Assembly (NCBI RefSeq): GCF_052425735.1
Contig: NC_135770.1
Span: forward strand, 19,964,001 to 20,028,000
Reading direction: 5' to 3'
Source of the DNA: Oculina patagonica
Taxonomy: Eukaryota
DNA: 64,000 bases
Part shown: positions 20,520 through 63,739 of the stretch, piece by piece
Position numbering within the stretch: the first letter of the stretch is position 1
Layout of the letters: each line of letters starts with the position of its first letter
The notes under the pieces: generated by a model
Seen by the model: only the letters and a program-made list of their open reading frames with translations
Told to the model about the DNA's origin: nothing
Databases searched by the model: none
Position numbers and translations under genes: made by a program

Positions 20520-21713
20520 TTAATACTTGCAAAAAGGAGAGTCTTTAGACAGCAGAAGAGACCAGCCTTGGAATGGCTGTACAGACACTGAATCTGAAGT
20601 GTCGTCAGTATCAACGGTAAATCCCAGCATTCCTGCTACAAGTGTGCCACTGTCCTTCACACAGGAGACAGGGTCTTCAATGGTCAGCGGAACAGTAACA
20701 ACACCAGTTGACATGTCGTCAATTTCCAACAGGTCCTTCTTTCCCTCCAAAAACTCGGTAATCCAGCCCCTGTAAGATTTTTGCCCGCCTGACCCAAAAC
20801 TTTCCTGGTAGCTGATAATATGACTCCACCACTCCCTATCTGGTCTCCCGTGGTAAGTAGCCAATAACTCGCTGAAGACTTTCTCCACCAGATCCCACCA
20901 TTCCGATTCCAAACCAAGATCTTTCTCTATCGGTTCAAGCAGTGTTCGCAGTATCTTCAGTTTGGATTTTAACTTGCTCCAGTCGTCTTCAGTGCCTAAC
21001 ATCTCCACTGCAGGGATTCCACAGTCAAGTATCATTTTAAAATGAAAATACTCTTGAACTGAAGACATCAATGTGATCTGCGAAACGATTTTCTGCACTG
21101 CAGTTGTGGTGCTGAAATCTGCCGCCATTCCATCCACGAACTCAGGTACTTTGACATTCTCTTGTATTCCCTTCGCTATTTGATCAAAGAACCAGCTGTA
21201 GTCGACGGTGTAGATGCCCTGGTTAGTTACTTTCACCTCGATGGTTTTCTTTTCTTCGTGATCAACAAACATCTTGCGAACGGTCTCTTTCTTCGCATTT
21301 TTGTCGATAGCGGAGGCGACTCGTTTGATAACACAGAACCACCAGTCATCTGGCGAGGTTCGTAGTTTCCAGTGGTTGTTGTAGGCTGTCAGAACGGCGG
21401 AAAACAGTCCGCAATTTCCAAGTGAATAAACGTTCTCCGTTGATCCCACTGCGGCAATTACTCGATTAGGAGAATCGATTTTACCTAGCATCGAACCTAG
21501 CAGCTTCCTCTCAATCGCTGAGGCTTCGTCATTTGTGTTTTGAGAATCTTGCGCGTACTCGTTGAACAATTCTTTGGCTTGGCTTTGTACAAGCCTGCTG
21601 TCTACAAACTTAGAAGGAACGAGGTTTTCGGCGAGAACAACACAAGTGATTTTCAATCCATCGGCGGTCGTGCGCTGACTGATAAGAGGCGGCTTCGTTT
21701 CGTAGTTACCCAT
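20520..21713 (-). CDS. DUF4419-like protein copy 2, intronless, ~397 aa (starts MGNYETK)
   Basis: Uninterrupted ORF with first in-frame ATG at 21713. Motifs AYNNHWKLRTSPDDWW, FSTTT, CGIP and GWITEF match my recollection of DUF4419 (PF14388); needs an HMM check. Confidence 0.85.
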   Translation of the reverse strand: MGNYETKPPLISQRTTADGLKITCVVLAENLVPSKFVDSRLVQSQAKELFNEYAQDSQNTNDEASAIERKLLGSMLGKIDSPNRVIAAVGSTENVYSLGNCGLFSAVLTAYNNHWKLRTSPDDWWFCVIKRVASAIDKNAKKETVRKMFVDHEEKKTIEVKVTNQGIYTVDYSWFFDQIAKGIQENVKVPEFVDGMAADFSTTTAVQKIVSQITLMSSVQEYFHFKMILDCGIPAVEMLGTEDDWSKLKSKLKILRTLLEPIEKDLGLESEWWDLVEKVFSELLATYHGRPDREWWSHIISYQESFGSGGQKSYRGWITEFLEGKKDLLEIDDMSTGVVTVPLTIEDPVSCVKDSGTLVAGMLGFTVDTDDTSDSVSVQPFQGWSLLLSKDSPFCKY

Positions 21714-22007
21714 CAGTCGGGTGAGGAGCAAGAAAACAAAACACAAGACGAGAGCTACCGAGGACTGATAACGTAGGACTGATAACGTAGAGTGAGAAAA
21801 TATTCACAAAAGGTAGGAGAATTTTTTTATGGAATGAGGTCGACTGCCTGCTCTCGCGGTAGGTACGTTATGTATGGAAATTTTTGTGTCCCCAGATCCG
21901 CTGAGCGAGGTGAGCGCAGGCGATGGATCCCTCCTCGCGTCTCACGTGACCGACCCTGCGTTTTTTCCGCGGTGCCGTCTGAAGTACACCCACGCGACGT
22001 TTATGTG

Positions 22008-22705
22008 ATGAAGTCTTTGTAATTTTTTGTCGTTTTTTTGTTTTATTTCAATCTTGCTTTCTGCCAAGCCTTGCTTGTCAAACTACACTGGTGCAGTCTA
22101 CGAGCATGTTACATTCTTTGTCGTTGAAAACAAGACTGAATTAACTCACCCAGCTAGCAGCTTTGGAAGTCATGCAGAAGAACCTCGACGTTTACCTTAT
22201 TGTTATTTATTTTCGCGGGACTTAATTTTCGCGATTTTCAAAAAATCGCAAAATTAAAGACCCACGAAAATTTATTTCAAACGTTTCTATTGTACTTTTT
22301 ATGTTAATTTCGTATTTTTGGCCAAATCGCGAAAATTAAGTCCCGCGAAATATTCCCGTTCTATTTTCGCGAAATTAAGTTCCCGCGAAAATAAGTAGCA
22401 ATAAGGTACCAAACAGAGGCAGTCCTGGCAAAATCCAAGGGTGCCGACATCAAAGTCTTTCCAGAGGATGGTTTGTATGGCTTTTACTTTACACGCGAAC
22501 AAATCTTTCCTTTTCTTGAAATTATCACGGATCCATCAAAGATGGAAAATGTTGGATTCCCTGCAGAGATCCCGATCGTTTCGACAACACTGAAGTGTTA
22601 GGGGAGCTGAGCTGCATTGCGCAAAACTCTTCCATTGCGGTGGTTGCTAACATGGGCGATGTGCAGTATTGTGACAAGTCGGATCCACACTGCCCCGATG
22701 ATGGC
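22008..22705 (+). pseudogene. Truncated vanin/pantetheinase pseudogene
   Basis: Near-identical to 34241-34722, with a stop at codon 5 (ATG AAG TCT TTG TAA), small indels, a MITE insertion, and truncation after CDKSDPHCPDDG. Confidence 0.9.
22195..22406. mobile_element. Tc1/mariner-type MITE in the vanin pseudogene
   Basis: ccttattg...ttcgcggga / tcccgcgaa...caataagg TIR with TA TSD. The empty site is seen in the intact gene (gtttaccaaac, ~34421). Confidence 0.9.
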
Positions 22706-23561
22706 TGCGGGGGCAATAATAAAAAAACGCTTTATTTAACCACAATCTGTATTAAAGCAAATATATGCTCGAGGGGTCGTGTGTACGTGTGACTTACTAC
22801 TTACCTAAGAAAAATTAATATTACACTGTAATAAAATGAAATGAACGATATTATATTTTAACAAGAAGCTCTCAAAGCTTAAAACTGACGTGACCAGCCT
22901 ATGGGAAAATTGTGGGGAGACAAAAAAATGCACCCCCCCCCCCCTCCGCCATGCCCATTATCCGCGTCATTTGTGTTGCGACTTACAAACAAAAGGTAAG
23001 AAGACACCTTGTGTGACATTTCATGGTTGACGAGTTCCATCTGCAATTAATTATTTTTCTTATATTCTAATGCTGGCCAAATTTTATCCCCACGATCCTG
23101 ATCCGTGAAGCCAAAAAGTCTATTAAACCAGCATCCAGTGCTGTATCGAATTGCTGCTTAAACATTGAATAACTCGATCTAAAAATGGAAAATTGAAGCA
23201 GATAATTAAATCAATTTTTTGCTGAACTTCTTCCTGGTACACGCGGAAGAATAGTTCGGAATTGATCTTGCGTGATGACATGTCTTTCAGTGACAGCTTA
23301 GAGGACCAACAACTTAACTCAGCCAATGAGTATGTTTTATTGCCAGCCCAATATTTCGAATTATTAAAGCATAGACGGCAACTCATTTGCAGATTATTCG
23401 TTTCTAATAATCAATGAGCCAGCAATTTCGACATAAGCCTACCGCCTTTAGCTGCTATTAAAAGCTGCTGTTCCTACTTAAAACTAAAAAGAACTAAAAA
23501 GTGGAACTCAGTGAATGTAGGCTGTGGCATTGCTTGGGGGTTACTCTCCCTATAGAAGCTA

Positions 23562-24487: not shown

Positions 24488-25636
24488 CTACTTGAGAAAT
24501 GGTGAGTCTTTAGACAGCAGAAGAGACCATCCTTGGAATGGTTGTACAGACACTGAATCTGAAGCATCGTCAGTGTGGACAGTGAAACCCAGCATTCCTG
24601 CGACAAGCTTGGCATCATCCTTCACACAAGAGACGGGATCTTCCATGATGAGTGGAACAGTGACAAGGCCAGTCGTCATGTTATAGATTTCCGTGGGACT
24701 TTTCTCTCCTTCTAGGAACTCGGTAATCCAGCCCCTATACCCTGAGGTTCCACCTGACTCCCAAGCACGTTTGTAGCTCATAATATGACTCCACCATTTC
24801 CTATCTGGTATCCCCTGAAAAGTAGCCAGTAACTTGCTGAAGACGTTTCCCACTAGATCCCACTACTCCGATGACAAACCAAGATCTTTCTCTATGGGTT
24901 CAAGCAGTGTTCGCAGTACCTTCAGTTTGGAATTTAATTTGCTCCAGTCCTCCTCAGTGCCTAGCATCTCCAATGCAGGGATTCCGCAGAGAGTCCCCAT
25001 CCTAAAGTCGAAATACTCTTGAACTGCATGCATCAATGTGATCTGCGAAACGATTTTCTGTACTGCAGTTGTGGTGCTGAAATCCGCCGTCATTCCATCC
25101 ACGAACTCAGGTACTTTGACGTTATCTTGTATTCCTGTTGCTATTTGATCAAAGAACCAGCTGTAGTCGACTGTATAGATGCTTGTGTCGGGCACAATCA
25201 CCTCGATGGTTTTCTTTTCTTCGTGATCAACAAACATCTTGCGAACTGACTCTTTCTTCGCGTTTTTTTCGATGGCGCAAGCGACTCGTTTGATAACACA
25301 GAACCACCAGTCATCTGGGGAAGTTCGTAGTTTCCAGTGGTTGTTGTAGGCTGTCAGAACGGCAGAAAACAATCCGCAATCTCGAAGCGAATAAATGTTC
25401 TCAGTTGACCCCAAGGCGGCAGTCATTTCATTAGGACGATCGAATCTGTTCTGTTTTAAGTGTTTTCTTTCTTGCGCGTACTCGTTGAGCAATTCCTTCG
25501 CTTGGCTTTGTACAAGCCTGCTGTCTTCAAACTTAGAAGGAACGAGTTTATTGGCGAGCACGACACAATTGATTTTCAATCCATCGGCCGTCGTTCGCTG
25601 ACTGATAAGAAGCGGCTTGGTTGCGTTGTTGCCCAT
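24488..25636 (-). pseudogene. DUF4419-like copy 3, single nonsense codon
   Basis: TGG>TAG at 24863-24865 (SE*WDLV versus SEWWNLV). The rest is in frame and very close to copy 4. Confidence 0.85.
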
Positions 25637-26523
25637 CGTGTGAGGAGCAAGAAAATAAAACACACCACGGAAGCTACCGGGGGCTGATAATGTAGAATGA
25701 GAAATTATTCAAAAAGCTTTTAAATATTCACAAAAGGTTTCAGGAGAAATGTAGTTGAAAACACCACACGCAGCCACGCGCACAGTTCTGACTTCCTCCT
25801 GTCCGCTGAGCGAAGTGATTGCAGGCGATGGATCCCTCGCTTTCGCGTGACCCACCATGCGTGTCCCTGCGTGAGCCGAAATTAGTCGACTAGACACACG
25901 CGACGTTAGACTTGCCCCAAGTCGCTCGTTTTTTAATCGGGCGGGGCCTGGGCCCGATTCATAATCTGCACAGAATTTTTAACCGGGTGGGGGTCTGTGC
26001 CCCCCGGTTCATAATCTACCTTCGGTTTTTTTTTTTTTAGTTTTTTTGTCGGTAGGGCATTGAAGGTCACGCATGTTGATTGGCTTAAAACAGGTCATCT
26101 TTCATCACCCACTGAAATGCCAGTGGAGGAAGGAGGGGAGGGGAAATGTTTTAATTACTTGCCACTTGAGGGATTAAAATTACGTGCGTTATACGCGTTT
26201 TCCGTGTGTTTAACTCAACAACAAATCATCGCTTAGACCACAGAGCAAAATAGAATTGCTGCTCAGTTAGAAATGACCGAATATATGAGAGTCAAGTTAT
26301 ATATTATGCGTTTTAAAAGTAGAACGAAAACAACTCTGATATCTCTACCTTCAAAGTCTTCAAAAGCGATCAAAGTGCCTTTGACCTTTAACACTGATGG
26401 CCGAGTATCGTATATCGCATGTCACGCTTCAACATAACGCACTTCTTGTTGAACAGCAACAAAAGGAAATAAAACGCTACTGGGTATACGTCTAAAAGCC
26501 TTAGGCTTTCTTGTTAGCTAAAA

Positions 26524-26553
26524 CATAGTTAGTAGAGGTGACTACTAACTATG
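26524..26553. mobile_element. 30-bp TIR-only remnant (P-element-like excision footprint)
   Basis: Perfect 12-bp TIR catagttagtag/ctactaactatg around a 6-bp spacer, with a 7-bp TSD gctaaaa. Confidence 0.75.
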
Positions 26554-28850
26554 GCTAAAAGAGTGGTTAAACATTAACCACCCGGTTTCGAGCTACTAAG
26601 TAGCTTCTTGTTTTTTTTTGTCGGTAAATCGATCCAGACCAACGCGGCCCAGCCGGCTCTTCTGTCACGGTCACGCAAGATTTAATATTTAATAGCGATC
26701 AGCCGATCACTCGCGTTTAACATGAACACTCTGCTCTCTGAAATGTATAATTTTGTTTCATTCCATATTTTACAAAAAGAGAGGGCTGAATATATCACAT
26801 AGCGAAAACAAAGACCGCTTGGACATGTCCAAGCTATTTAAAACTACCACTACATCATGCATCAGACTCATGTCACGCGATCTCTCGCTTGTAGCTATAA
26901 ATAATCATTCACCTATTTTCTGTTTGAATACTCTGCGCTCTGTTTGTGTGAAATATTTATTGTTGTGTTACTCAAGCGTTTGGCTCGGAGCGATTACAAG
27001 TCGTACAATTTACCTGGAACGTGTTAAATATTGCAAAACGACGACTTATTTTCTAAATATCCCAATTTTTGTTTTGAGTTTACGGTATTTTGAGAATCGA
27101 AACGTTATCGAAACGTAAGTTGCAAGCTCAGCAAGAATGTGTCAAAGCACGGGATACACGTCGTCGCGCCAGGGGAATTACCAAAAGCTTGTCGGAAGAC
27201 GCTAAACGGAGAAACACAATGGGATGGCCTTAGTCTACTTTTTATTTTGGCGTGATTTGGCTTTCTTTTAAATGAACTGGTTTGGGTTTATTTTATTGAA
27301 CATTCGGAACAAAATAAATATTTGCATGCGTAAGCAGGCATTTTTCCGGCTAGGCATGTGGTTTTAAAAAGCAAAAGATGACGTGGTAAAGGAAATTCAT
27401 GTCACGTTCACTCCGTGACCACAGGGAGCCCAGGCTCACGCTTTGACAACTCGGTCAAAATGGCGGCTTCAAAATTATAAAGATTTGTATGAAACATTAT
27501 AGGAAAAAATCAGATCGAAAGAAAATATAATAAACCGCTAGTAAAGTTCACATTTCATTTCATATGTTGTCTATGTGACGTTTCTTGACTGTTCTAAAGC
27601 ATTTAAACCCTATTTAACCGATATTTTTAATTTTAGTTTACTCTTACCTAAATATATGCAAGGGTGAACACTTCCGACGCTAGATAAACACCACTGTTCG
27701 ACACAAATGAGCCAAAAATTGCTTTTAATTTGATCCACTCACTCCAAAACTTCGCATGGGCATAATTCGAAGACCATTCTTTTACTGCAGCAAATTTTTG
27801 ATTCGCCTGCCACTCTCCGCGATTAAAGAATACGGGAAAAATGACCAAGGTTTGCAAACTTTTGGCTTTCTCCAACACCTTGAACCAGAGAGAGTAGACG
27901 CATTTTTAATTAGCCTTGACTTTCACGTGCAGCCTCACGCTATGATTGGGCGATGGTTGTCAGGGCGACGATACTTTTTTCCCGTGGGGGAAGGAGGCAA
28001 ACGAGACTGTCAAGGGTGCTCTGCCTTACACAAGTACACTGGCCCGAGCTCCCATAGGGTAATTTTGCCTCACATACAATTCTAGAATCACAGGTATACC
28101 GTGACGGAATTTTGCAGAACCCTGCATATTAATATTCGTCGTTAAAACCGGGAGACTGATCAACTGACGGACAAAAATAACTAAAAGAGTCCTAAAACCA
28201 GGCGCTAATCAAATGACTTGTTACTCTGTCAGTTTTTCCGTGAGATTTCTGTTTCTCGTCGTGAGATTGAAGTGAAAACCGTGAGTCTCAGGACAAAATC
28301 GTGAGACTTGAGAGGTCTGCAGATGCTGTTTACACTGACAGTTGCGTTTATTTTTAAGCTTTTTGTTTGTTTTTCTTAGTGATAAAAGCAATCACACGAG
28401 ATTCCCACCATTCTAGTCATATTAGTCAATCAGATAATAGCTACCGTTTCGTGAGAACAATGTGTTTTATGATTTTGGTACAGCAACAGGGGAAAAGCAT
28501 GTCTTAAACAGGGTTGCGCCTTACAGAACTGTAGGTATGTCGACCGACAATATGTCAGGAAAACCTTTTTTTGCCGTTTCCATTTTTGATTAGATCCGAT
28601 TTCAAAGATGTAATAGACCGTAGTAGTCGAACCACATGTGTGCCTTTACTTCAGTTGACTAGCTAGCTTAGGCAAGTTAGAATTTGTGCTGATTAAACTA
28701 GTTCAAAACAACTGATCCCGTGGACATTATTTTCCTTATGTGTCTTCAATTTGAGTATCACTCGAAAACACACGCGAAAGGTCAACCATGAAACTTTGCT
28801 TGGTAGTGTGCGTGAGATTATTGAAACGTGAGGCTGAAAACGTTCTTATC

Positions 28851-29769
28851 CAGGCGTAGTCAATCGATAGAAATCGATATCGGAAATCAATCGATACAAT
28901 CGATATCTATCGATATCAATCGGTGATTGATATCGATTGAAATCGGTAATCGATAACAATCGAACTCACAGAAAAATATTATTATCGATTGTTATCGATT
29001 GAGAAAATCGATAATAATCGATAGCAATCGACAGTAGTCGATAACAATCACTAATCCCAAGAAGCCTCTGGAGGTGTATTCGTTTCAAACATATTCTAAA
29101 GATGGCGTTACTATTTAGTAAAACAATACGACACCGGCGTTTAAATGGTGAAACATTTTATTAATTCAGCATCTAGTCCTGCCGAAGTCCAGTCTGGGGT
29201 CCAGGCAGAATGTTTTCATAAAGATTCTCGGGGTCCATTCAACCCAGGCAGCGGTCAGAGCGCTGTCGATTGCTTCTCCATTATGGCATTCAGTTCTTGC
29301 GTTGGTGAAAGTTCAACTCGATCCAATAATTATATGCACGGACATTGTAGCCCTCCCAAATGATTCCATCTTTTTGCTTCATACAATGCATTTATGACGT
29401 TGTTATAGCGAGACTAGAGGGTTGCGCACCGCTACATATTGTTCTTGTTCTTTTAGTACAAGTTTGGTAATATTTGCATTACATATCCACGATTGAAGAA
29501 CTCAATACACCCATAAAACAACATCGTGTCCATGTTTAACATGAGGAATTGACATAAATAACTTCCGATAAAAATCGATAACAATCAATAGCAATCGATA
29601 AACCAATCCTTATCGATTTCCGATGTCAATCGAACTCACAACTTTTTTTCTTTATCGATTCCTATCGAGTGGTATCGGAAATCGATATCAATCTTCCTTG
29701 TCAATCTTCGATTGATATCGATTGCTATTGATTGTTATCGATTATCGGTTTATCGATTGACTACGCCTG
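28851..29769. mobile_element. hAT-like MITE with ATCGAT subterminal arrays
   Basis: caggcgtagtcaatcgata / tatcgattgactacgcctg TIR; 8-bp flanks ttcttatc/gtcttatc. Confidence 0.85.
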
Positions 29770-30149
29770 GTCTTATCAGTCACAGACACAAAACAACAAA
29801 GGAGAATCTGTGACTTTGTTGACCTTTTTAAGATATTTAAGAATTATCTGTGACAGATAAATGCTTATGAATCTGTGTGTGTCTGTATTCTTTTTGTGCT
29901 GTTATCGGAGTCCTATAACTGTTCAACGGCTACATGCTGGAGTGTACTTTGAATTTAAGTCAAGCCTGCTTGGAAAAATCGCTTTTGAAAAGGTGTCGGA
30001 AACAAGTCGCGTGACAATAATAAGTACAAACATTATCCGCCTGACAGAAATAGCAACGATCAATTAGAATGAATCAAGATGGACGCTTAATTACCGTGAT
30101 TGTGATCGGAATGGATACTATTAAGGCATCGATTTCAAAACTTTAAGCA

Positions 30150-30510
30150 TGTAATCTTATACAATAATTAAAGATAGAAACTTCACGGACAGTTACTCAG
30201 AGTTTCACGCACGATGCGATCATCAGACTGTGTCGTTAGATGCGGTGAAATACAATTTAAACTACGTTCATGGAGGACGGTTGGAACGATCCTGTCTCTG
30301 ATTGGCCGTGTAGTACTTGTTTTCGTGCCTGCACTTGGTAACAAGCTCAGATCTTTTGTTCAAGAAGGTGGATCTGTCAGCTGATAGTATGCAGAGCTTC
30401 TCCGTCAGAAACAAATTGCAGCGTGACGGGTTTCCGCTGTAAGCGCTTGCTCTCGTGACAATGGACCACATGATCGAAAATTCGGTGTTGTTGTCTTTCA
30501 GGTCCCAAAT
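30150..30510 (-). mobile_element. Penelope-like retroelement 3' fragment (end of GIY-YIG region plus terminal repeat sequence)
   Basis: WDLKDNNTEFSIMWSIV...CNLFLTEKLCIL...LNKRSELVTKCRHENKY resembles Penelope-like endonuclease C-termini and is followed by a hammerhead motif. Confidence 0.8.
30189..30231 (-). ncRNA. Minimal type I hammerhead ribozyme
   Basis: Minus strand reads acagu-CUGAUGA-ucgcaucgugcgu-GAAAC-ucuga-GUA-acugu: stem I, full catalytic core, stem II cgca/ugcg, short palindromic stem III and a GUA cleavage triplet. Confidence 0.85.
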
Positions 30511-30923
30511 CTTATATATATTTTTTAGTTGGATTTTAAGCCTTTCGCGTGAGAACCTTTTGTAGTTGGAATAAACCTTTGTTTTTATCTTTAACTGTGA
30601 AATCGTGAAGTTCAGCGCAAGCATTCACGACAAAGGTTTCTGAATTGACAAGTGAATAAAGAGTTTCGTATATCGTGTTGTGAATGTCACAACTTTTATC
30701 GAGCGACAAAAGTAGCTTTAGTTTTAGTTTAAATTTTAGGGGTGAGGAGTCTAAATGTTTCTTTATGTTAGATGCACGCTTTTTAATTTTCGATATCTTT
30801 ACAAGCAATAAATAGACGTGAAGAGCGGTCTATTTTCAAATAAATCAAACTCTGAAAAGAGTCACAAGACAATAAGCCCAGAGGGCTTTTGATCTAAAGA
30901 TTTTACTGTGCGGCGCCGTGCCT

Positions 30924-33734
30924 TTACAACAACAACAATTTATTGAGGTATTTCCATAAAAATACATGGCATTACCTACTTACACTTGAGAAATTACAAG
31001 TAGTATCAGAAATAAAACAAAAATGCGATTTTATCATTTGGAAAATAAAGTTTCATGTCTAAGAGACATAGCTTGAAAAACAAAAGCAGCAGTTGATCGA
31101 CAAACAGCAGGATCAATGCTGTTACAAAGAAATAAAGATTTTGCATTAATATCAAACTCGTTAAAAATACTATATTTGGCGGTTATTTCATTAAAGAACT
31201 TTAAACGTATGTTTTCGTATAGCTTGCATGAAAATAAGAAATGCATTTCGTTTTCAATTTCATCCGAATGGCAGAAAGAACAGATTCTCAAATTAATAGG
31301 AGTCTTGGGTATTGTGTGTCTACCAGTTTCGATACGTAATTTGTGATTCCCAAGTCGAAATTTGCTAATGGCAGTTCTGTGGTGAGGATTGTTGATTGCG
31401 TCCAGAAAACTAGATTTTTTGGTATCTTTTTTAAATGAATGATAAAATTGTAATTTTCTGTTTGTGCTAATTAGTTTTAGTTGATGAGCTATTAACGCTT
31501 TGCTAATGTTTTGCTTAATGTAAGAAGTAAAGAGTTTTCCGTTGTTTTCATTTAATATTAAAGAGCTCGAGTTGTATTTATTGCATAACTGATTCATTTT
31601 AAGCATTAGACCTGTCTGGGTTTTATCAGCCATCTCCTTAGAAAGCTGTAGACATTGCTTAGCGATGTTATTTTCTGGTAAGCTCTGAAGATGAATCCAA
31701 AATTTTACTATGGAGGTTTCGATGGCTAATTTTAGAGGAAGCCTTCCAAGTTCATTTCTGGTTGCAACATTTGGGCATTGTTTATTCACTCCTAAGAATT
31801 GTTTGCAAAAATATATGTGTGTTTTTTCGATGTCATCTTTCTCCCAATTGTTGAAATCATCTTTATCGTAGATACCCCAAACTTCTGAGCCGTACAGTAA
31901 AATAGGGAGAAAGAGAGAATCAAAGAGTTTATTTGTGACACTAAGGGACAATTTTGAAAAATCCAAGTAACGGCGAGTAGCAAAGATGGATCTTCTTGTT
32001 TTATCTTTTAAGTTTGATTTACAGTCTCTAAAGCTTCCGTTTGCAGAAAAATTTATACCAAGATAAGTGTAATTGTTGACAATTTCAATTTTGTCATTGT
32101 TTATATGAAAATAATGCTTGTCGAGTAAAGATTTCCTGCATTTCTTTTGGAAGATGACAACTTTCGTTTTCTTTGGATTAACGGACAGCAGCCAATCGTT
32201 ACAGTATTTTTCAAGAATGGAAAGTGCCTTCTGCAGACCTTTAGCTGAGTGAGAGATTAATACTAAGTCGTCTGCGTAAAGTAAACAGTTTAAATTGGAG
32301 CCGTTAGGTAGAGCGATAGGATCTGTGTCTTCTCGGTCTAGTAAAAAAGGGATTTCATTTAAGTATAAATTAAATAACATGGGCGACAGAATGCAGCCTT
32401 GACGTACACCTTTCTGATAATCGAAAAATTCAGTCCTTTGGTCACCATACTTAACAGAACATTTAGTTTTTGAGTAAAGATTTTTAATCAAATCATAGAA
32501 ATTTCCACCAATCTTATAATGTAAAAGTTTGTAGAATAGTCCATCATGCCAAACCGAATCAAAAGCTTTCTTGAAGTCAATAAAACAAGTGTACAGTTTG
32601 CCTCTTGCTGTATGACTGACATATTTATCCACTAATGTTCTTAGGGTAAAAATATGATCTGATGTGCGATGATTAGGTAAAAAACCGATTTGAGCTTGAT
32701 GTAATATGTTTTGTTGAAGTACATGATTTTTCAACCTGGCATTGAGGACCGAGGTAAAAAGTTTTCCGAGACAGCTACTAATGCATATTCCCCTGTAGTT
32801 AGAAGGGTCGTTTTTATTTCCCGATTTATAAATTGGTGTAATTAATCCTTCGCACCAAGTGCTAGGAAAGAAACCGCTTTTCAGAATAAGATTAAATAAT
32901 TTGCAAAGGGCAGTGATAAAATATTGCATTCCAGCTTTTAGCATTTCATTGCGAATCTTGTCAGGACCGGGGACTTTCTTTGATCGAAGTAATTTTGTCA
33001 TAGATTCTATTTCAGCAGGTGTAATAATTGTATCTAAATAATTGTGGGTGGTTTTTGTTTCTTCTAAGCTGAAGAGTTTCTCCCCTAAAATATTATTGCG
33101 AGGTAATAATGATGAGGTATTTATGGACGAATGTAAATCTTGAAAATGGTGATACAACTTGTCAACAGGAATATCATGATTGTTGGAAGGGGGGTTGTGG
33201 CCTTCCTTCATTAATTTGAGGTTATCCCAAAATTTATGACTGTCTTTGTGATTAACAAGGTCTTCAATTTGGGAATTGAGATGTTTCGATTTTTTGTACT
33301 TAATCAATTTCTTGAATGTTTTGCGAGTCGTATGGTAATCATGTCTAAGTTTTGCATCGTAAGGATTTCTATGTTTTTGGTTGGAAAGCATACTGAGATT
33401 CTTTCGCAGAAGTGCACAGTCTTTATCAAACCATAAGTTATGTTTCTTTGTTTTCTTTTTAGGACAAGCGATTTTGAGAGATCGTAAACATGTATCAGTT
33501 ATGATTTTAGTGAATTGTTCTGTTGCCAAATCAATTCCTTTACAATCAAAGGTAAAGTTAGTCTTCTCAAAGTTCGATAGACGTAAAAGAACGTCATCTT
33601 GTTTTAAGGCATTGCGAAAATTTTCAAAGGATGATTGATCCCAGATGAACTGTTTTGGATTATTGAAAGTTTTTACATTTGTATGACTGGTAGTTTTGGA
33701 AGAGGCTGGTGTTTGGAGATTTAACCAGCAGATG
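30924..33734 (-). mobile_element. 5'-truncated non-LTR retrotransposon (probably RTE-X-like clade)
   Basis: Open ORF2 from the end of the endonuclease through RT; 3' aataaa followed by a (TTG)n tail at ~30924-30943. No clear TSD. Confidence 0.88.
31034..33529 (-). CDS. LINE ORF2 reverse transcriptase with C-terminal CCHC zinc knuckle (5'-truncated; frame open to ~33730)
   Basis: PGPDKI, NYRGI, FIDFKKAFDSV, GVRQGCILSP, LLYADD, YLG and HKLRIETGRH...CSFC...HFLFSC motifs with no stops over 831 aa. Confidence 0.9.
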   Translation of the reverse strand: MATEQFTKIITDTCLRSLKIACPKKKTKKHNLWFDKDCALLRKNLSMLSNQKHRNPYDAKLRHDYHTTRKTFKKLIKYKKSKHLNSQIEDLVNHKDSHKFWDNLKLMKEGHNPPSNNHDIPVDKLYHHFQDLHSSINTSSLLPRNNILGEKLFSLEETKTTHNYLDTIITPAEIESMTKLLRSKKVPGPDKIRNEMLKAGMQYFITALCKLFNLILKSGFFPSTWCEGLITPIYKSGNKNDPSNYRGICISSCLGKLFTSVLNARLKNHVLQQNILHQAQIGFLPNHRTSDHIFTLRTLVDKYVSHTARGKLYTCFIDFKKAFDSVWHDGLFYKLLHYKIGGNFYDLIKNLYSKTKCSVKYGDQRTEFFDYQKGVRQGCILSPMLFNLYLNEIPFLLDREDTDPIALPNGSNLNCLLYADDLVLISHSAKGLQKALSILEKYCNDWLLSVNPKKTKVVIFQKKCRKSLLDKHYFHINNDKIEIVNNYTYLGINFSANGSFRDCKSNLKDKTRRSIFATRRYLDFSKLSLSVTNKLFDSLFLPILLYGSEVWGIYDKDDFNNWEKDDIEKTHIYFCKQFLGVNKQCPNVATRNELGRLPLKLAIETSIVKFWIHLQSLPENNIAKQCLQLSKEMADKTQTGLMLKMNQLCNKYNSSSLILNENNGKLFTSYIKQNISKALIAHQLKLISTNRKLQFYHSFKKDTKKSSFLDAINNPHHRTAISKFRLGNHKLRIETGRHTIPKTPINLRICSFCHSDEIENEMHFLFSCKLYENIRLKFFNEITAKYSIFNEFDINAKSLFLCNSIDPAVCRSTAAFVFQAMSLRHETLFSK

Positions 33735-34240
33735 AGTTAAGCCAAAGCACTGAAAGAGGTCAGGTGGTCAAACATTACCCGCACGATTATAAACTGCTTG
33801 CAGTTCTTGTTTCTTTGTAAGACTTTGTGCAACATGTTGCGCGCAACAACACTTTTTTTTATTTATTCACCCTTGATAGGAACACTTGAGCAGTTTGAAG
33901 ACGAGTTCTGTTTTCGATTCTGTTCCCAGACACGTTGTCTAGCCATGTCTGCTCGATTCCACATCACTTCAGCAAAATATCGTTCATAGTTATTCATTGC
34001 TTATGCATAAGCTCTGAAATAGAAAAAGAATAACAATTTCAGTATTTGTTAACGGTTAAATTAAGGATTTATCGTGGAAAAAGCCATCTCGTTAGTTCGT
34101 GACTATAAATCCGAACCTTTCAGCTAATTACTCTTACGGTTTGTTGCGGTTTGGTCTCGCATCTGATTGGTCGCGAAACAATAAACAGTCCAAAAATAAT
34201 TTTTGGCGTCACGCTTTTATGATTTTCACTGGAATATGCG

Positions 34241-50400: not shown

Positions 50401-52715
50401 ATGTGACCTCGAACAAGCCAATAACAGCGCGCCCTGTTGGGAAAAATTCTAAATATTATAACGATAACACTTAATGAAAAGGCTCATATAATTTATAAAT
50501 TAAAAGCTAACCTTTCCCTCGTGATCAACAAACATCTTGCGGACGGACTCTTTCTTCGCGTTTCTGTCGATGGCAGAGGCGACTCGTCTGATAACACAGA
50601 ACCACCAGTCATCTGGTGAGGTTCGTAGTTTCCAGTGGTGGTTGTAGGCTGTCAGAACGGCAGAAAACAATCCGTAATCTCCAAACGAATAAACGTTCTC
50701 CGTTGACCCCAAGGCGGCTATCATTTCATTTGGACGATCGAATCTGCTCTGTTTTATGTTTTCTCTTTCTTGCGCGTACTCGTTGAGCAATTCTTTGGCT
50801 TGGCTTTGTACAAGCCTGCTGTCTTCAAACTTCGAAGGAACGAGTTTTTTGGCGAGCACGACACAATTGATTTTCAATCCATCGGCCGTCGTTCGCTGAC
50901 TGACATAAGGCGGCTTCGTTTCGTTGTTGCCCATCGTGTGAGGAACAAGAAAACAAAACACACCACGGAAGCTACCGGGGACAGATAATGAAGAAAGTCA
51001 GCTTAGTTCGAGGTCTTCCAGAGTCCAGGGTCCAGAGTATTAAAAAGGTTCACTGCTGCTCAAAACGCTTTAAGGACTTTTTAGACGTCCAAACACGGAC
51101 GTCTTATTGTCTTGTTACAGTGTCTAATAATAAATATTACGACATAAATTTTAACCACGTATTAGGTCGGGACGTGACTAGTCGACAGGTTTCTGCGACA
51201 AGCCGCTGTGACAAGGCGCTTGACACACAGCGAATTTTATTTGGAATAGTGGGAATATGAACTAGTTTTCTAATTAACTATGGCAAAAATACATAAGTCT
51301 GCACACGCTACGTCAACCTGCTTTCGCTCATTTTGGCGCTGCTACCAGTCGCACGATCGCGAATTCAAACTGGGTTGAATTCCTGCGACTGATCGCAGCG
51401 ACAAAATTCTAATTCAAGATAGCAGATTATTGTTATGTCATTTAATTTCAAATCGAATAAAAGAAGCGGCCATTGCGAGTATTTTTCAGTTTGCTGGTTC
51501 GTCTTTATTTTCTATGGGAACACTTATACCCACACAAAACTTTACAGGAGAAAGTTGTCATAAACTGATGAAAGACCTGACAGTGTTTTCCGTCGCAGCG
51601 TGATTATACCGAACGTGATTCATTAATTATCTTATGTCGCTATCACGTTTGCTACCCAAAACTTGATTTCCTTAGATATAGTACGGTGATCTGTTTGCTA
51701 TAGTTAAGAACTGAAATGTCTAAAGTCAAAGCCGGCCTTAACATATGTTTTGCTAAAAAACGGTAATACGTGATGCACTTGATGTGAATATTTGGACCTT
51801 TACCTCTAAACTGAAACTACTTCCTGTTAAACGCGGAAGAAATATCTGCGACGATCTGTTCGCTATAGTTAAGTACTGTATTGTCTAAAGTCAAAGCCGG
51901 CCTTAACATATGTTTTGCTAGCGAACAGTAGTACGTGATGCACTTGAAAGTAAATATTTGGGCCCTCTAGCTCTCTGCTGAACTTCTTCCTGTTACACGC
52001 GGAAGTAATAGCTTGAATCTCCTTGGGTGATGAAATATCTTGTTTCGACAGATTAGAGGACCAATAATTTAATTCAGCCAATTAGAATGTTTTATTGCCA
52101 GGCGGCAACTGATTTGCAGATTATTCGTTTCTAATTATCAATGAGTGAGCAATTTCGACATAAGCCTACCGCTATATATAGAAAGCTGGTGTACCTACTA
52201 AAAACTAAAAAGAACTTAAACTCAGTGTATGTGGGCTGTGGTATTACTTGAGGGATACTCTTCTTATAGAAGCTATAATATGGTAGTAATATGGCAAATA
52301 AAGTCACGTTATCGTGTTCGCTACACATAATATTTAGAGACTTCAAGCAACCAGGACAGCAACGCTGAGGACAACTTCGATTAAAACTGAGTTATTTTAC
52401 CTACGAATCTTTCTCGATAATCTAGATCCATTCTGTTTATCTATCATTGTCAGAGCTATTTCAAACCTGGATATTATGTAACACAGCGCTCATGTCGAAA
52501 AAAAACTTTTTTGAATTTCGCTTGAATCAATTCGTGATAATTGAAAGCAGCCTCTTGAGTATCGGCAGAATAGTGAAAGCTTTTGTTGCCTTTATTCTGC
52601 CAACTAGTACAGCCACTATTTTGTCGTATGCCGCTTAATTTACATAAACAAAGCTAGGAATTGTTTAACTGTTTCTTCTGGCACCTCAGATTATGTTGTA
52701 TGTATGAATAATTCC
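47430..52715. repeat. Duplicated intergenic spacer (47430-49215 versus 50935-52715) defining a ~3.5-kb tandem unit
   Basis: Collinear, highly similar non-coding sequence including an internal ~170-bp dimer. Partial copies at ~23250-24480 and ~60860-62350. Confidence 0.9.
49217..50934 (-). CDS. DUF4419-like protein copy 5, two exons, ~385 aa (starts MGNNETK)
   Basis: Exon 1 50512-50934 (...VDHEGK), GT-AG phase-0 intron 49952-50511, exon 2 49217-49951 (KTINVVVPERSIY...). The spliced frame is open. Confidence 0.85.
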
Positions 52716-52718: not shown

Positions 52719-54407
52719 CTACGGAGTTTTCTTGAGAAATGGCGAGTCATTAGACAGCAAAAGAGACCAGCCTTGGAATGGCTGTACAGACACTGAATCT
52801 GAAGTGTCGTCAGTGTGGAGCGTAAAACCCAGCATTCCTGCGACAAGCTTGGCAGTGTCCGTCACACCAGACACGAGGTCTTCAATGGTGAGCGGAACAT
52901 TGACAAGACCAGAAGTCATGTCACGGATTTCCATCAAGTCTTTTTTCCCCTCTAGGAACTCGGTAATCCAGCCCCTGTACCCTGAGGAATCACCTGACGC
53001 GAAACGACGTTTGTAGCTCATAATATGACTCCACCATTCCCTATCTGGTCTCCCCTGGTAAGTAGCCAGTAACTTGCTGAACACTTTCTCCACTAGATTC
53101 CACCACTCTGATGTCAAACCGAGATCATTCTCTATGGGTTCAAGCAGTGTTCGCAGTACCTTCAGTTTGGATTTTAGTTTGCTCCAGTCGTCCTCAGTGC
53201 CTAGCATCTCCACTGCTGGGATTCCGCAGCGAGTCTTCATCTTAAAGTGAAAATACTTTCGAACTGAATACATCAATGTAATCTGGGATACGATTTTCTG
53301 CACTGCAGTTGTGGTACTGAAATCCGCCATCATTCCATCCACGATCGAACTCGGGCACTTTGACGTTCTTTTGTGTTCCCTTCGCTATTTGATGAAAGAA
53401 CCAGCTGTAGTTGACTGTGTAGATACTTTGGCCAGGCACTGCCACGTTGATGGTTTTCTTTCCCTCATGAACAACAAACATCTTGCGAACGGACTCTTTC
53501 TTCGCGTTTTTGTCGATAGCGCAAGCGACTCGTTTGATAACACAAAACCACCAGTCATCTGGGACACCCCTCTGTAACAGACCTGGTGACACCTGATTTT
53601 CCACCAGGTTTTCAACACAAAATCGACCAGGGAAGTCAAAAATCCACCAGGTTGATTACTTACTTTTTGTATGCAATACACTTACACACTTAGCGGGGTA
53701 ATCGTGCACAATTCTGAGCCGCGCGCGCTGTTCAATTCGCTCTGAATCATTCACAAGCTCGTATTACATACAGAAAAGGAAACATATCTGTTTTGTCTCT
53801 TTAGTGACCTGCATGACAGCAGAACAAGCGACAAAAACAATAGAACAAAGTTAACAATTACTTTTTGCTATATTTACATCAAGTTATAGTCAATTATTAA
53901 ATCATGTATATTTTTGCCGCGCGTCGTTTTCTTCTGTTTATAGAGATTTTGGTTGATATTTTCCTGCCCAGGTAAACAAAATTCCTCACCGGGGAGAAAT
54001 AAAATTGACCAGGGATTTTTCAGATAATCACCAGGGAACAGGGAGGACAAATTTCCACCAGGGAGGGCAAAATAACCCACCAGGTCGAGTTTCACCAGGT
54101 CTGTTACAGAGGGGTGTTCTGGGGAAGTTCGTAGTTTCCAGTGGTAGTTGTAGGCTGTCACAACTGCAGAAAACAATCCGCAATTTCCAAGCGAATAGAT
54201 GTTCTCCGTTGATTCCAAGGCGGCAGTCATTTCTGTAGGGAAATAGAACTCGGCTTTGAGCAACTCCTTCGCTTTGCTTTGTACAAGCTCACTATCTTCA
54301 AATTTAGAAGGAAGGAGGCTATTCGCAAGCACGACAGAATTAATTTTCAATCCATTGGCCTTCGTTCGCTGGCTGATTGGACTTGACTTGGTTTCGATAG
54401 CTTCCAT
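52719..54407 (-). pseudogene. DUF4419-like copy 6 (MITE insertion plus 4-bp frameshift)
   Basis: MITE at RTSP^DDWW; a 4-bp insertion near 53343 shifts the frame after VPEF. Confidence 0.88.
53564..54117. mobile_element. Young MITE in copy 6
   Basis: Perfect 26-bp TIR acacccctctgtaacagacctggtga; 6-bp TSD tctggg. Confidence 0.92.
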
Positions 54408-58307: not shown

Positions 58308-60120
58308 TCATATAAGACTTTTAAGCTTACTTACAGGGTCTTTAATGGTGAGTGGGACAGTGACAAGACCAGCTGTCATGTCACGGATTTCCGTGGGGCC
58401 TTTTTCTCCCTCCAGGAACTCAGTAATCCAGCCCCTGTACCCTGAGGTTCCACATGACGCAAAAGGACGTTTGTAGCTCTTAATATGACTCCACCATTCT
58501 CTATCTGGTCTCCCCTGGTAAGTAGCCAGTAACTTGCTGAACACTTTTTCCACTAGATTCCACCACTCCGATTCCAAACCACGATCGTTCTCCAGTGCTC
58601 CAGTCCTCTTCAGTGCCTAGCATCTCCACTGCAGGGATTCTGCAGCGAGTTGTCATCTTAAAGTCGAAATACTCTTGAACTGAATACATCAATGTGATCT
58701 GCGAAACGATTTTCTCCGCTGCAGTTGTGGTGCTGAAATCCGCCGTTATTCCATTCATGAACTCAGGTACTTTGACGTTCTCTTGTATTCCCTTCGCTAT
58801 TTGATCAAAGAACCAGCTGTAGTCGACGGTATAGATGCTTTTGTCATTTTGTCTTTTTGTCTGAATCTCGAATGCCTCATGTTTGCCTCATGTTGTTAAT
58901 TTAATAAACAGACAACAGTCGCAATAACAGCGATTTTTCGGCTTCTCGGTCTCATTTTGATCTCAATTTCGTCGCTAAAATGGATCGTGACTACCTCGCG
59001 AAATTTAAGACGATACGATATGTCATCATTAGCGATAATTTTTATCGCTTATGATGACGGTTTTGCATGGAAAGAATTCTTCTTCAGGTATATGTCTGAA
59101 CGCTTATTAAATAAGCGGACTTAGGATGACTTGGTTTGACTTAGGCTAAGACAGACTTAGTGTGTAGTGTGAACCCAACATATAATAGAGCAGCTCAAAA
59201 CAGGAAGTTAAAAATTTCTTTTTCCACCAAGAACGATCAGAATGCGAAAAATGTGCCAATCACAACAACAACATCAACAACAACCATTTTATTTTGCCAA
59301 ATTAAATAGATAATTAATTACAGCATAACATAAATTAACTAAAATAGGCAAAAAACCAACCCAGAATAGAAACAAACTAAACGAGCTGAGTAGTTACAAA
59401 ATAAATTTAATTGCTTTGACAAGGTTGTACATAAAAGAAGACAAAAGTAAAATAAGACAAGTAATAAGTAATTAAGTACCATGCAACAACGGCGTTTTAG
59501 CGAAATTTTGGGTTAAAAAAGAAATAATCAAGCTACATGGTTAATTATTAACAGTTAATTAACTGACAACTGACAAATGGCCAAAATTTTAACTGACAAC
59601 TGACATTTGTACTCCCCCATCCAGACCCTCTCGATTGTTTTCCTTCCCTCATGATGAACAGACATCTTGCGAACGGCCTTTTTCTTCCTGTTTTTATTGA
59701 TGGCGCCGGTGACTTGATTGATAACACAGAAACACCAGTCATCTGGCGAGGTCCGTAGTTTCCAGTGGTTGTTGTAGGCTGTCAGGACGGCGGACAACAA
59801 TCTGCAATCTGTAGGTGAATAAATAGTCTCCGTTGATCACAGGGCGGCAATGATTTTTTTGGAGTGTCACTTCTCCGTTTTACTCCGCCGCAACAACAAG
59901 CGAAAATTCGTCTACGTTGACTGGCTCTGTCAGACGCCAAACTGTACCAAAATTTCATGAGTTACTCTTTCGCTTGGTTAGCACGAAGCAATGCAAAGGA
60001 TTTGCTATCTTCGAGCTTAGAAGGAACGAGGTCATCGGCGAGTGAAACAGAATTGACTTTTAACCCATCGGCTGTGATAAGCTGACTCATAGCAGGCAAC
60101 ATGGTTGTATTCATGGCCAT
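58308..60120 (-). pseudogene. DUF4419-like copy 7, heavily degraded
   Basis: Insertion at ~58846-59630 after KTIE, an internal deletion near 58590, C-terminal truncation after KDPVS, and frameshifts in the 5' part. Confidence 0.85.
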
Positions 60121-60972: not shown

Positions 60973-61230
60973 GGGGAGCAAGGATGGCTCAGTGGTGAGA
61001 GCGCTCGCCTCCCACCAATGTGGCCCGGGTTTGATTCCCTGACTCGGCGTCATATGTGGGTTAAGTTTGTTTTGCTCCGAGGGCTTTTCACCGGGTTCTC
61101 CGGTTTTCCTCCATCCACAAAAACTAACACTTCCAAATTCCAATTCGATCGGAAATACACGGCCCCGCAACCTTATAGCTCTAATATATTACCTATACGT
61201 GAATAGATATACGTGTCTAAATAAAGGTAA
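60973..61230 (+). mobile_element. tRNA-derived SINE (family B)
   Basis: Closely matches 3362-3610 and is absent from the paralogous spacers. Confidence 0.82.
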
Positions 61231-61602
61231 TTTAACAGTAGTACATGATGCATATATGCATGTGCAAATTCTTCTAAACAACTTCCTGTTACACGCACTA
61301 AAAATATCTGGAAACACCTTGCGTGATTAATATAATTAATCACGTTGTTTTGATAGCTTAGAGGACCAATATCTAAACTCAGCCAATCAGAATGTTTTTT
61401 GCCGGTCCACTATTTCGAAGTATTTAAGCATAGACGGCAACTCATTTGCAGATTATTCGTTTCTTAATATCAATGAGTCAGCAATTTCGACATAAGCCTA
61501 CCGCTATAAAAAGCTGGTGTACCTACTAAAAATACTAAAAACTAAAACGGACTTAAACTCAGTATTTGTGAGCTGTGGTATTGCTTAAGGGATACTCCCC
61601 AT

Positions 61603-62023
61603 CCCGGGAAGGGGGGGGGGGTACTCAAAAAAGTTTTATACGGGGAGGCTCCGCCCCGAGTTCTAACCCCTTACCCTTTTATATACCATTTTGACAGAAA
61701 TTGTACCCCTTTCGTATACCTTTAACTGAAAAAAGGTACCCTTTTCATATACCTAAAAGACGTGGCGTGGACTTAAAACAGGACGTTTTCTTGTCATTTT
61801 TATGTAGCGCTTAATAAATTTAAATAATACAGCCATAAATTGCGTCTGTTCGAAATATTTTAATTAAAGGCACTTTTTAATACCTAAGTGACAGATTTCC
61901 ATACCCTTTCATATGCCTAAACTCGTGAAATCCCTACCCTTTTATATACCTGAAGCCTTGAAAAAGTACCCCTTTCGGGCGGAGCCTCCCCGTATAGGCC
62001 ATTATAGGGAGTACCCCCCCGGG
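61603..62023. mobile_element. MITE with CCCGGG termini and 8-bp TSD
   Basis: TSD ctccccat; empty site gatactccccatgtagaagct at ~48752. Confidence 0.92.
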
Positions 62024-62359
62024 CTCCCCATGTAGAAGCTATAGTTTTGTAGCAATATGGCAAATAAAGTCTCCGAAAGTCACGATATCGTGTTCGCTAC
62101 ACATAATATTTAGGGACTTCAAGCGACCATGACAGCGACGCTGAGGACAGCGTCGATTAAAATATGAATTATTTTACCTACGAATCTTGCGCGATAATCT
62201 GAAATCACTCTGTGTGTCTATCATTGTCAGAGCTATTTCAAAACTGGATATTATGTTAGACAGCGTTCATGTCTGACCTTTTCGAATTTGGCGTTAACCA
62301 TTTTCTTATAATTGAACGGCAGCCTCCTGAGAATCGGCAGAACTGAGAGCTTTCTATTG

Positions 62360-63739
62360 CTATTTAGTACAGTCAGATTTCGGGCACTTCAGATTACGTT
62401 GTTTGAATATGTCTTCGGGAGCTAGCTTGCGAAATGGCGAGTATTTAGACAGTAGAAGAGACCAGCCATGGAATGGCTGTACAGACACTTCTGGGGAGTC
62501 GTCAGTGTGAATAGTAAAACCCATCATTCCTGCTACAAGTGTGGCATTGTCCTTCACACAAGTACCTTCAATGGTAAGTGGAACATTGACAAGACCAGAA
62601 GTCATGTCACTGATTTCCATCACGTCTTTTTTCCCCTCTAGGAACTCGGTAATCCAGCCCCTGTACCCTGAGGAATCACCTGACGCGAAAGCATCTTTGT
62701 AGCTCATAATATGACTCCACCATTCCCTATCGGGTCTCCCCTGGTAGGTAGCCAGTAACTCGCTGAAGACGTTTTCCACTAGACTCCACCACTCCGATTC
62801 CAAACCAAGATCGTTCTCTATGGGTTCAAGCAGTGTTTGCAGTACATTCAGTTTGGATTTTAACTTGTTCCAGTCCTCCTCAGTGCCTAGCATCTCCACT
62901 GCAGGGATTCCACATAAAGTTAGCTTATAGCCAAAATACTCTTGAACTGAATACATCAATGTGATCTGCGAAACGATTTTCTGCACTGCAGTTGTGGTGC
63001 TGAAATCCGCCGTCATGCCATCCACGAACTCAGGTACTTTGACGTTCTTTTGTATTCCCTTTGCCATTTGATCAAAGAACCAGCTGTAGTTGACGGTGTA
63101 GATGCTTGTGTCGGACACAATCACCTCGATGGTTTTCTTTTCCTCGTGATCAACAAACATGTTGCGAACGGACTCTTTCTTCGCGTTTCTGTCGATGGCG
63201 CTGGCGACTCGTTTGATAACACTGAACCACCAGTCATCGGGGGAAGTTCGTAGTTTCCAGTGGTTGTTGTAGGCTGTCAGAACGGCGGAAAACAATCCGC
63301 AATCAGTTCCACGAATTGAATAAATATTCTCTTCTGATCCCAGGACGGGAATCATTTCATAGGGGATATCGTCGAAATGGGGGGAATCGATGCGAGCATT
63401 AAAATCTCGGCGGGCAATTGCCTTCTGTAGGAACCACTTCGCTTTCCCTGACACAAGATTGGTATCTTCGACTTGAGCTGGGACAAGGTTATTGGCGAGT
63501 AAAACATAAGTGATATTTAAACCATCGGAGGTGGTACGTTGACTAACATTAGGTGGCCTGGTTTCGTTTTTGGGTAACTCATTCGCTTGGCTTCCTACAG
63601 AGTTGTCGACGAGTAAAACAGAAGTAACATTCATACGCTGACTAACAGCAGGGGACTTTGTTTCGTTCTTGGCCATGGTATAAGCAGTAAAATCCTTTAT
63701 CAGCAGACAGATAAGCAGACAAGTCACAAAAGGTGCCAT
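62360..63739 (-). CDS. DUF4419-like protein copy 8, intronless, ~459 aa, predicted secreted
   Basis: Open ORF. The likely start MAPFVTCLLICLLIKDFTA is a signal peptide (an upstream ATG exists at 63787). Duplicated N-terminal segment, seven N-glycosylation sequons and an extended C-terminus. Confidence 0.87.
   Translation of the reverse strand: MAPFVTCLLICLLIKDFTAYTMAKNETKSPAVSQRMNVTSVLLVDNSVGSQANELPKNETRPPNVSQRTTSDGLNITYVLLANNLVPAQVEDTNLVSGKAKWFLQKAIARRDFNARIDSPHFDDIPYEMIPVLGSEENIYSIRGTDCGLFSAVLTAYNNHWKLRTSPDDWWFSVIKRVASAIDRNAKKESVRNMFVDHEEKKTIEVIVSDTSIYTVNYSWFFDQMAKGIQKNVKVPEFVDGMTADFSTTTAVQKIVSQITLMYSVQEYFGYKLTLCGIPAVEMLGTEEDWNKLKSKLNVLQTLLEPIENDLGLESEWWSLVENVFSELLATYQGRPDREWWSHIMSYKDAFASGDSSGYRGWITEFLEGKKDVMEISDMTSGLVNVPLTIEGTCVKDNATLVAGMMGFTIHTDDSPEVSVQPFHGWSLLLSKYSPFRKLAPEDIFKQRNLKCPKSDCTK

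Follow-up and report, generated by a model that had tools for sequence, protein, structure and literature searches.

The stretch of the Oculina patagonica genome analysed here (contig NC_135770.1; 64,000 nt, referred to below as the window, whose positions are used throughout) has a G+C content of ∼40%, contains no N and carries eight gene copies for proteins with the DUF4419 domain (PF14388), all on the minus strand. The copies, numbered 1 to 8, were located by a tblastn search of the window with one of them; they belong to a birth-and-death tandem array, part of which lies in the window. In the best reading of the sequences, the paralogues include a cytosolic class predicted to be N-myristoylated (copies 2–5, starting with Met-Gly-Asn, MGN) and a predicted secretory copy (copy 8), as the MGN start is very probably real and the N-terminal extension of copy 8 is conserved and coding. 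We assign a probability of roughly 0.6 to the view that in this birth-and-death array the first codons set the destination of a single domain: Gly at residue 2 (Gly2) would be acylated, Ala or Glu at this residue would not, and copy 8 would carry a signal for the endoplasmic reticulum (ER). The initial annotation had proposed a split into secreted and N-myristoylated versions of the same protein. The predicted cytosolic and secretory classes stand, but the split is not two-way: many paralogues have Ala2 or Glu2 and lack both the myristoylation motif and a signal peptide.

The proposed course of events starts from an ancestral gene whose product would have been cytosolic and would have begun with the conserved Met and, after it, x-x-N-x-[S/T]-K. 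Gly at codon 2, as in copies 2–5, would yield M-G-N-x-x-T-K, an optimal substrate of N-myristoyltransferase (NMT) once Met is removed; where codon 2 specifies Ala or Glu instead (copies 1, 6 and 7), the product is not expected to be acylated. On the branch leading to copy 8 and its Desmophyllum counterparts, an in-frame ATG located 63 nt upstream would have converted a T-rich leader into a 21-residue hydrophobic extension. The N-terminal unit of copy 8 would also have been duplicated, with a gain of N-glycosylation sequons, including those made by parallel Lys-to-Asn replacements creating N-[IV]-[TS]. Myristoylation, ER entry, signal peptide cleavage and glycosylation are steps that we infer from the sequence.

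Gly2 starts in copies 2–5 and across the family

Four copies start with MGN: copy 2 (20520-21713) with MGNYETK at 21713, copy 3 (24488-25636) with MGNNATK at 25636, and copies 4 (46280-47428) and 5 (49217-50934) with MGNNETK at 47428 and 50934, respectively. Their codons 1 and 2 read ATG GGT or ATG GGC. Gly2 is missing from copy 1 (16116-18420, start MAKNKAK), copy 6 (52719-54407, MEAIETK), copy 7 (58320-60120, MAMNTTM) and copy 8 (62360-63739), which reads MAKNETK at the conserved Met (63676). As the initial annotation had it, copies 2–5 begin with these peptides at their first in-frame ATG and fit the N-myristoylation consensus: Gly2, permissive residues, Thr6 and Lys7 are present in all four, and the three heptapeptides match a PROSITE-style myristoylation pattern. 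Gly2 has been kept across copies 2–5 at a synonymous divergence (dS) of about 0.4, and its codon is GGT in some of them and GGC in others. The AlphaFold (AF2) model of the copy 4 protein has a predicted local distance difference test score (pLDDT) of 78.6, with values <50 in residues 1–6 only and the first strands starting from residue 11. We predict that copies 2–5 encode NMT substrates, myristoylated co-translationally after Met removal.

Recoverin, NCS-1-type calcium sensors, ARFs and calcineurin B are classical N-myristoylated proteins of the M-G-x-x-x-S/T-K type. Copies 2–5 share with them Gly2, a small uncharged residue 3, Ser/Thr6, Lys7 and a flexible tail before the folded domain; the DUF4419 domain is unrelated to theirs, a second membrane signal is absent and, unlike in those families, Gly2 is not conserved between close relatives. 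In the established view, stable myristoyl-dependent membrane binding needs two signals. The MGNNETKPP tail has neither a nearby Cys nor a polybasic patch, therefore stable membrane residence is not implied; the placement of these proteins on the cytosolic face of membranes, also made in the initial annotation, exceeds what the sequence says.

For comparison across the family we used 107 full-length homologues, mostly from corals (among the matches listed, 120 of 120 carry PF14388). The criterion adopted was Gly2 together with Ser/Thr6. The PROSITE-style pattern was tried as a filter and judged too strict, as it forbids Lys3 and rejects starts of the MGKNESK type; known myristoylated calcium sensors start with MGK. 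Gly2 occurs in 25 of the 107 homologues, and 23 of these 25 have Ser/Thr6 as well. Coupling between the two residues was counted in the 61 homologues starting at the conserved Met, where Ser/Thr6 is found in 20 of 21 sequences with Gly2 and in 14 of 40 without it (Fisher p = 5.6e-6, kinship ignored). Wherever Gly2 occurs, the remaining positions of the NMT motif are preserved, which suggests that Gly2 is in use. When 10 phylogenetically independent pairs differing in Gly2 were compared, Ser/Thr6 changed in the same way in five, stayed unchanged in five and never changed in the opposite way. Clades that have a new, longer N-terminus again start with MGNGNSK, MGKVTSK or MGKSNSK (MGxxxSK), and the start of a Nematostella homologue is MGSQQS.

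Besides the missing second membrane signal, several observations weigh against a functional Gly2 class. The independent-pairs test is borderline (median sign-test p about 0.06). In a tree from which the N-terminus was omitted, the Gly2 state changes at least 12 times in 60 sequences and 19 times in 107 (shuffled mean 22.6); its scatter is nearly random, barely more clustered than shuffled labels. Gly2 alternates with Ala and Glu, all three having G-initial codons (Ala in 28, Gly in 25 and Glu in 19 of the 107 homologues), and sister sequences differ at residue 2, such as MGNSRSK vs MESNRSK and MGKNNSK vs MEKNSSK. Across the family the Gly2 trait is highly labile, as judged from these sequences, and is not a stable lineage split.

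The same distribution could be produced by a neutral toggle, in which codon 2 drifts among GGN, GCN and GAR under the Kozak preference for G at +4, Ser/Thr6 and Lys7 are kept for other reasons and the split has no functional meaning; MG copies may then be myristoylated adventitiously or not at all. The presence of Ser/Thr6 in 14 of 40 members lacking Gly2, and of Lys7 in nearly all, fits such drift. We regard it as a serious rival but rather unlikely, as it has to be set against the loss of Ser/Thr6 from 26 of 40 members without Gly2 compared with its retention in all but one of the 21 with Gly2, the lack of any opposite change in the independent pairs, the absence of Val (GTN) and rarity of Asp at codon 2, and the return of MGxxxSK in the re-extended N-termini. 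Furthermore, the established specificity of NMT predicts that such N-termini are acylated, selected or not.

In an Acropora-like clade (P0022, P0084, P0088, P0091, P0118 and P0119) a longer N-terminus, MWCPCLG, stands ahead of the old start motif. This start is Cys-rich and reminiscent of S-palmitoylation sites.

The hydrophobic extension of copy 8

Copy 8 is an intact, intronless open reading frame (ORF) with a Pfam match, encoding 459 residues. From its N-terminus, the product comprises a signal-peptide-like extension, an N-terminal module that is duplicated, the DUF4419 domain and, at the C-terminal end, a short tail of its own. The extension, a putative signal peptide, is encoded by 21 codons (MAPFVTCLLICLLIKDFTAYT, 63677-63739, minus strand) that start from an in-frame ATG at 63739, 63 nt upstream of the conserved Met; the initial annotation had already noted a hydrophobic stretch upstream of MAKN in this copy. 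The N-terminal module (63440-63676, minus strand) contains, as judged by alignment, two partial copies of the family N-terminal unit and five of the seven sequons of the protein.

The evidence that the extension is coding comes from comparison of copy 8 with its Desmophyllum pertusum orthologue P0006 (L003, 10001-11374). Similarity of the two genes sets in precisely at the upstream ATG, with none on its 5′ side. Downstream there are five indels, every one of them a multiple of three; one deletes the inner Met in P0006, so that the extension must be translated there. Over the 21 codons the non-synonymous divergence (dN) is 0.23 and dS is 0.63; the dN/dS ratio of 0.37 compares with 0.32 for the whole gene. 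A second Desmophyllum copy (L003, 13783-15716), 2.4 kb downstream of P0006, has an identical 21-residue extension and keeps the inner Met. In Kyte–Doolittle means of 11-mers taken from residue 4, copy 8 (3.23) and P0006 (2.86) are the top two of the 107 homologues.

The same two proteins are also the richest in sequons, with seven in copy 8 and five in P0006 (family mean 1.45; maximum for the rest, four); our recount confirms the numbers given by the initial annotation for copies 8, 2 and 4 (seven, none and three). The excess is confined to the N-terminal module (five sequons in each protein; p = 0.014 for copy 8 and p = 0.002 for P0006 in composition-preserving shuffles), and the same shuffles detected no sequon enrichment in the DUF4419 domain of copy 8. 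In all four N-terminal units of the two proteins the Lys of G-L-K-[IV]-x is replaced by Asn, yielding N-[IV]-[TS].

We conclude that the copy 8 extension is real, conserved, coding and signal-peptide-like; most likely it acts as an ER signal peptide. Some properties count against this assignment. The candidate cleavage site, a conserved A-x-T at residues 19–21, is a loose fit to the (−3, −1) rule and not its commonest form; there is no Lys or Arg ahead of the hydrophobic core, that is, no basic n-region, and the core comprises 11–13 residues only. The sequon richness of copy 8 and P0006 represents one evolutionary event, because the two are orthologues. The inner Met of copy 8 is retained in a perfect Kozak context (ACCATGG), as it is in the second Desmophyllum copy, and internal initiation is therefore possible.

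The loose cleavage site, the missing n-region, the short core and the retained inner Met would also fit an extension that is not a cleaved secretory signal but an uncleaved membrane anchor, or one bypassed by initiation at the inner Met to give a cytosolic MAKN protein; the lack of sequon enrichment in the copy 8 domain points the same way. We consider this improbable, given the translation of the extension in P0006, where there is no inner Met to start from, the purifying selection acting on the extension, and the enriched and positionally conserved sequons of the N-terminal module in both species. A core of 11–13 hydrophobic residues is too short for a transmembrane span. In addition, in many distant DUF4419 representatives (36–48% identity) the first strand of the domain is immediately preceded by an N-terminus of classic signal-peptide-like type; those representatives derive from mRNA-sized marine metatranscriptome contigs. 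A few other distant representatives start with MG and have Ser/Thr6, so that signal-peptide-like and MG starts, as predicted from sequence, both recur in distant DUF4419 proteins.

As for direction, we infer that the signal peptide was gained. The last ∼25 nt before the conserved ATG of copy 8 are clearly homologous to the leaders of copies 7, 6 and 4, and the extension is missing from all other listed coral and Nematostella homologues; in the AFDB models of DUF4419 proteins from amoebae, fungi and bacteria the domain starts at about residue 2. The more parsimonious history would thus be that a T-rich leader acquired an upstream ATG.

Other approaches to copy 8 added little. A word-based search for further orthologues of the signal-peptide type with residues 1–130 matched copy 8 alone, a Protein Atlas feature search with its N-terminus gave a best score of 0.54 and no lead, and 22 diagnostic sites, examined for signs that neighbouring cytosolic copies had exchanged sequence with copy 8 by gene conversion, gave a mixed pattern. 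Duplication of the N-terminal unit is also seen in Desmophyllum P0039 (OS493_007276), which starts with MGKNASK and has NES and NVT sequons in its duplicated unit. Proteins of the signal-peptide type are thus not the only ones with this duplication, which may reflect recombination among array members.

A comparable recruitment is described for venom RhoGAPs of parasitoid wasps, where a cytosolic protein was reportedly recruited to secretion after duplication by means of a signal peptide (bioRxiv 10.1101/2023.06.05.543686). Copy 8 would be alike in that an intracellular duplicate acquires an N-terminal hydrophobic signal while its domain remains recognisable. In copy 8 the signal seems to derive from an in-frame ATG further upstream, within a 5′ leader rich in T, and copy 8 adds the duplication of the N-terminal module and the gain of glycosylation sites; nothing indicates a venom or effector role for it.

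Leaders upstream of the conserved Met

The assignment of copies 2–5 to the myristoylated class depends on MGN being their true N-terminus. The description of their upstream sequence in the initial annotation, as lacking ATG and not being conserved in frame, is upheld. None of the four has an in-frame ATG in the interval from the closest in-frame stop on the 5′ side to the conserved Met, and the leader is not frame-conserved because copy 2 has a 4-nt insertion relative to the leaders of copies 3–5. The leaders are pyrimidine-rich, with no AG between the pyrimidine tract and the ATG. Copy 2 has no ATG in any frame in the 300 nt upstream of its start, and the spacer of ∼290 bp (21714-22001) that separates its ATG from a divergent vanin pseudogene, itself free of ATG on the copy 2 strand, leaves essentially no space for an upstream coding exon.

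The same aligned Met is the model start in homologues of Acropora, Montipora, Orbicella, Porites, Desmophyllum, Oculina and Nematostella, among them RefSeq-style entries named ‘uncharacterized protein LOC...’. In a 1.6-kb Joint Genome Institute (JGI) contig (L004) with an MGKNESK homologue, an in-frame stop occurs six codons upstream and there is no upstream ATG. On this evidence MGN is very probably the true N-terminus of copies 2–5. One feature weighs on the other side: a possible AG acceptor (a pyrimidine tract followed by TAG) is located 37 nt before the ATG in copies 3–5 and 41 nt before it in copy 2, and an intron in the 5′ untranslated region of copies 3–5 is therefore possible.

That MGN is internal in copies 2–5 and a hidden 5′ exon, possibly encoding a signal peptide, is spliced to this AG is very improbable: the pyrimidine tract and TAG at −37 in copies 3–5 (with a similar place in copy 2) and the 12 open codons from AG to ATG in copies 3–5 would permit it, but the unequal AG-to-ATG distances (37 vs 41 nt), which break the frame, argue against coding continuity, and so do the ATG-free upstream region of copy 2 with its close divergent neighbour, the many coral and Nematostella homologues modelled from the same Met, the stop in the L004 contig and the end of conservation at the ATG in the copy 8 orthologue pair.

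The leader of copy 1 has a different bearing on the argument. The initial annotation took it for a signal peptide broken by a stop, which would make copy 1 a decayed secreted copy; this we reject. The in-frame TGA is found at the same place upstream of the intact intronless orthologue P0024 (L006, a Tara metagenome scaffold from another coral), no ATG follows it, and copy 1 itself is a probably intact gene with three exons. The ‘hydrophobicity’ results from translation of a T/G-rich leader, and comparable hydrophobic read-throughs are seen upstream of the homologues P0010, P0046 and P0074, over-extended by the ORF caller.

The DUF4419 family, the array and its neighbours

The coral proteins match PF14388 with E about 1e-59; the match of copies 2, 4 and 8 is at 201–208 bits (gathering score 25 bits). 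The family comprises >5,000 representative clusters at 50% identity and is strongly expanded in reef corals. The same Pfam domain is present in proteins of fungi, amoebae, bacteria and other eukaryotes, but the coral proteins differ in having an additional conserved unit at the N-terminus, which includes the start motif. As to fold and function, Foldseek searches for fold relatives against PDB and Swiss-Prot gave no relative (template modelling score, TM, about 0.1), a VIA-align wide comparison with 48,161 chains returned helical membrane proteins only (Z < 5), a profile search of PDB sequences had no matches, and a literature search for DUF4419 returned two mentions, both incidental. The AFDB cluster matches are other DUF4419 proteins only (probability 1.0). 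One further homologue, A0A6S7G638 (899 residues, named chitinase-3-like isoform), has DUF4419 at residues 369–682, 54% identical to copy 4; the fusion may be genuine or an artefact of the gene model.

Divergence of duplicated genes by relocalisation of their protein products is well documented (PMC2397506; PMC3879971; PMC4202327). Like those duplicates, the DUF4419 paralogues share a domain and diverge mainly in short N-terminal targeting information; here a single tandem array sets predicted N-myristoylation against a predicted ER signal peptide and adds a third class with neither feature, and localisation is predicted from sequence alone. The locus would be a new instance of known paralogue relocalisation in an unstudied family, and the general surprise is modest because such relocalisation is already well documented. 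Two features perhaps deserve note: the high lability of the Gly2 switch and the copy 8 extension, whose ATG-proximal end matches the 5′ leaders of paralogues. The predicted division of close paralogues into a lipid-anchored or cytosolic class, a purely cytosolic class and a secretory class would give a first handle on the site of action of DUF4419. If the first codons do act as a labile code, nature would have tested, in the expanded arrays of corals, how quickly a single domain can be re-targeted. A wider scenario is held more tentatively and is, in our judgement, somewhat doubtful: DUF4419 would be an ancient domain working on both sides of the membrane, re-targeted in corals by a labile one-base Gly2 switch, flipped many times to turn myristoylation on or off, and by at least one de novo signal peptide derived from a leader ATG, with N-terminal duplication and glycosylation following.

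With respect to gene structure, copies 2 and 4 are intact and intronless (397 and 382 residues, respectively); a protein identical to that of copy 2 is encoded in a second O. patagonica assembly. Copy 3 is colinear with copy 4 (dS 0.083) apart from a premature stop at codon 258 (24863-24865). Copy 5 is intact and has two exons (50512-50934 and 49217-49951) separated by a GT..AG phase-0 intron of 560 nt (49952-50511) whose splice sites were read directly; the spliced coding sequence has no internal stops. The annotated product of copy 1 has 403 residues. Copy 6 is broken within the conserved SPDDWWF motif of the core and has a frameshift, and its annotated product of 282 residues skips the domain core. 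Copy 7 is degraded: tblastn pieces lie in three frames and the C-terminal part is missing. Pairwise dN/dS among copies 2, 3, 4, 5 and 8 is 0.30–0.47, which indicates purifying selection on the window copies.

The phase-0 intron of copy 5 lies between two Lys codons (VDHEGK/KTIE, the slash marking its position). It is also present in copy 1 (16875-17105) and absent from copies 2, 3, 4 and 8. Copy 1 has a further gap of ∼860 nt, from 18019 to about 17165, and its orthologue on L006 is intronless.

The array extends beyond the end of the window, where another MEAIETK copy and another MGNNETK copy adjoin copy 8 on its upstream side. They are located on the same chromosome past window position 64000 (L007, 1960-3648 and 5432-7137) and represent a recent duplicate of a pair like copies 6 and 5. 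The outside MGNNETK copy encodes P0002; its exon 1 is 100% identical to exon 1 of copy 5 and the remainder is 86% identical. P0002 was considered as the product of copy 5 and ruled out, as only exon 1 is identical and the gene is this recent duplicate outside the window. The idea that copy 8 heads the array in Oculina and Desmophyllum alike is also ruled out, by the two copies upstream of it.

Genes related to vanin/pantetheinase accompany two of the copies. An intact single-exon vanin/biotinidase-like gene (34241-35803, plus strand; CN_hydrolase and Vanin_C in Pfam) is the divergent partner of copy 3, and a vanin/pantetheinase pseudogene fragment (22002-22735, plus strand), detected by tblastn and by blastn to the intact vanin gene, is head-to-head with copy 2. 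The divergent pair of DUF4419 and vanin/pantetheinase genes has been duplicated (21713-22735 and 25636-35803). Between copy 3 and the intact vanin gene there is an inserted long interspersed nuclear element (LINE) reverse transcriptase (31034-33529, minus strand; RVT_1) with an open frame of 831 residues. A second non-long-terminal-repeat (non-LTR) retrotransposon remnant, also with RVT_1, is split into three ORFs (41547-43806, minus strand). Finally, the vanin pseudogene contains an inverted repeat (22193-22408) with arms at about 22193-22234 and 22367-22408, the segment 22211-22350 being self-complementary; it may be an inserted small hairpin element.

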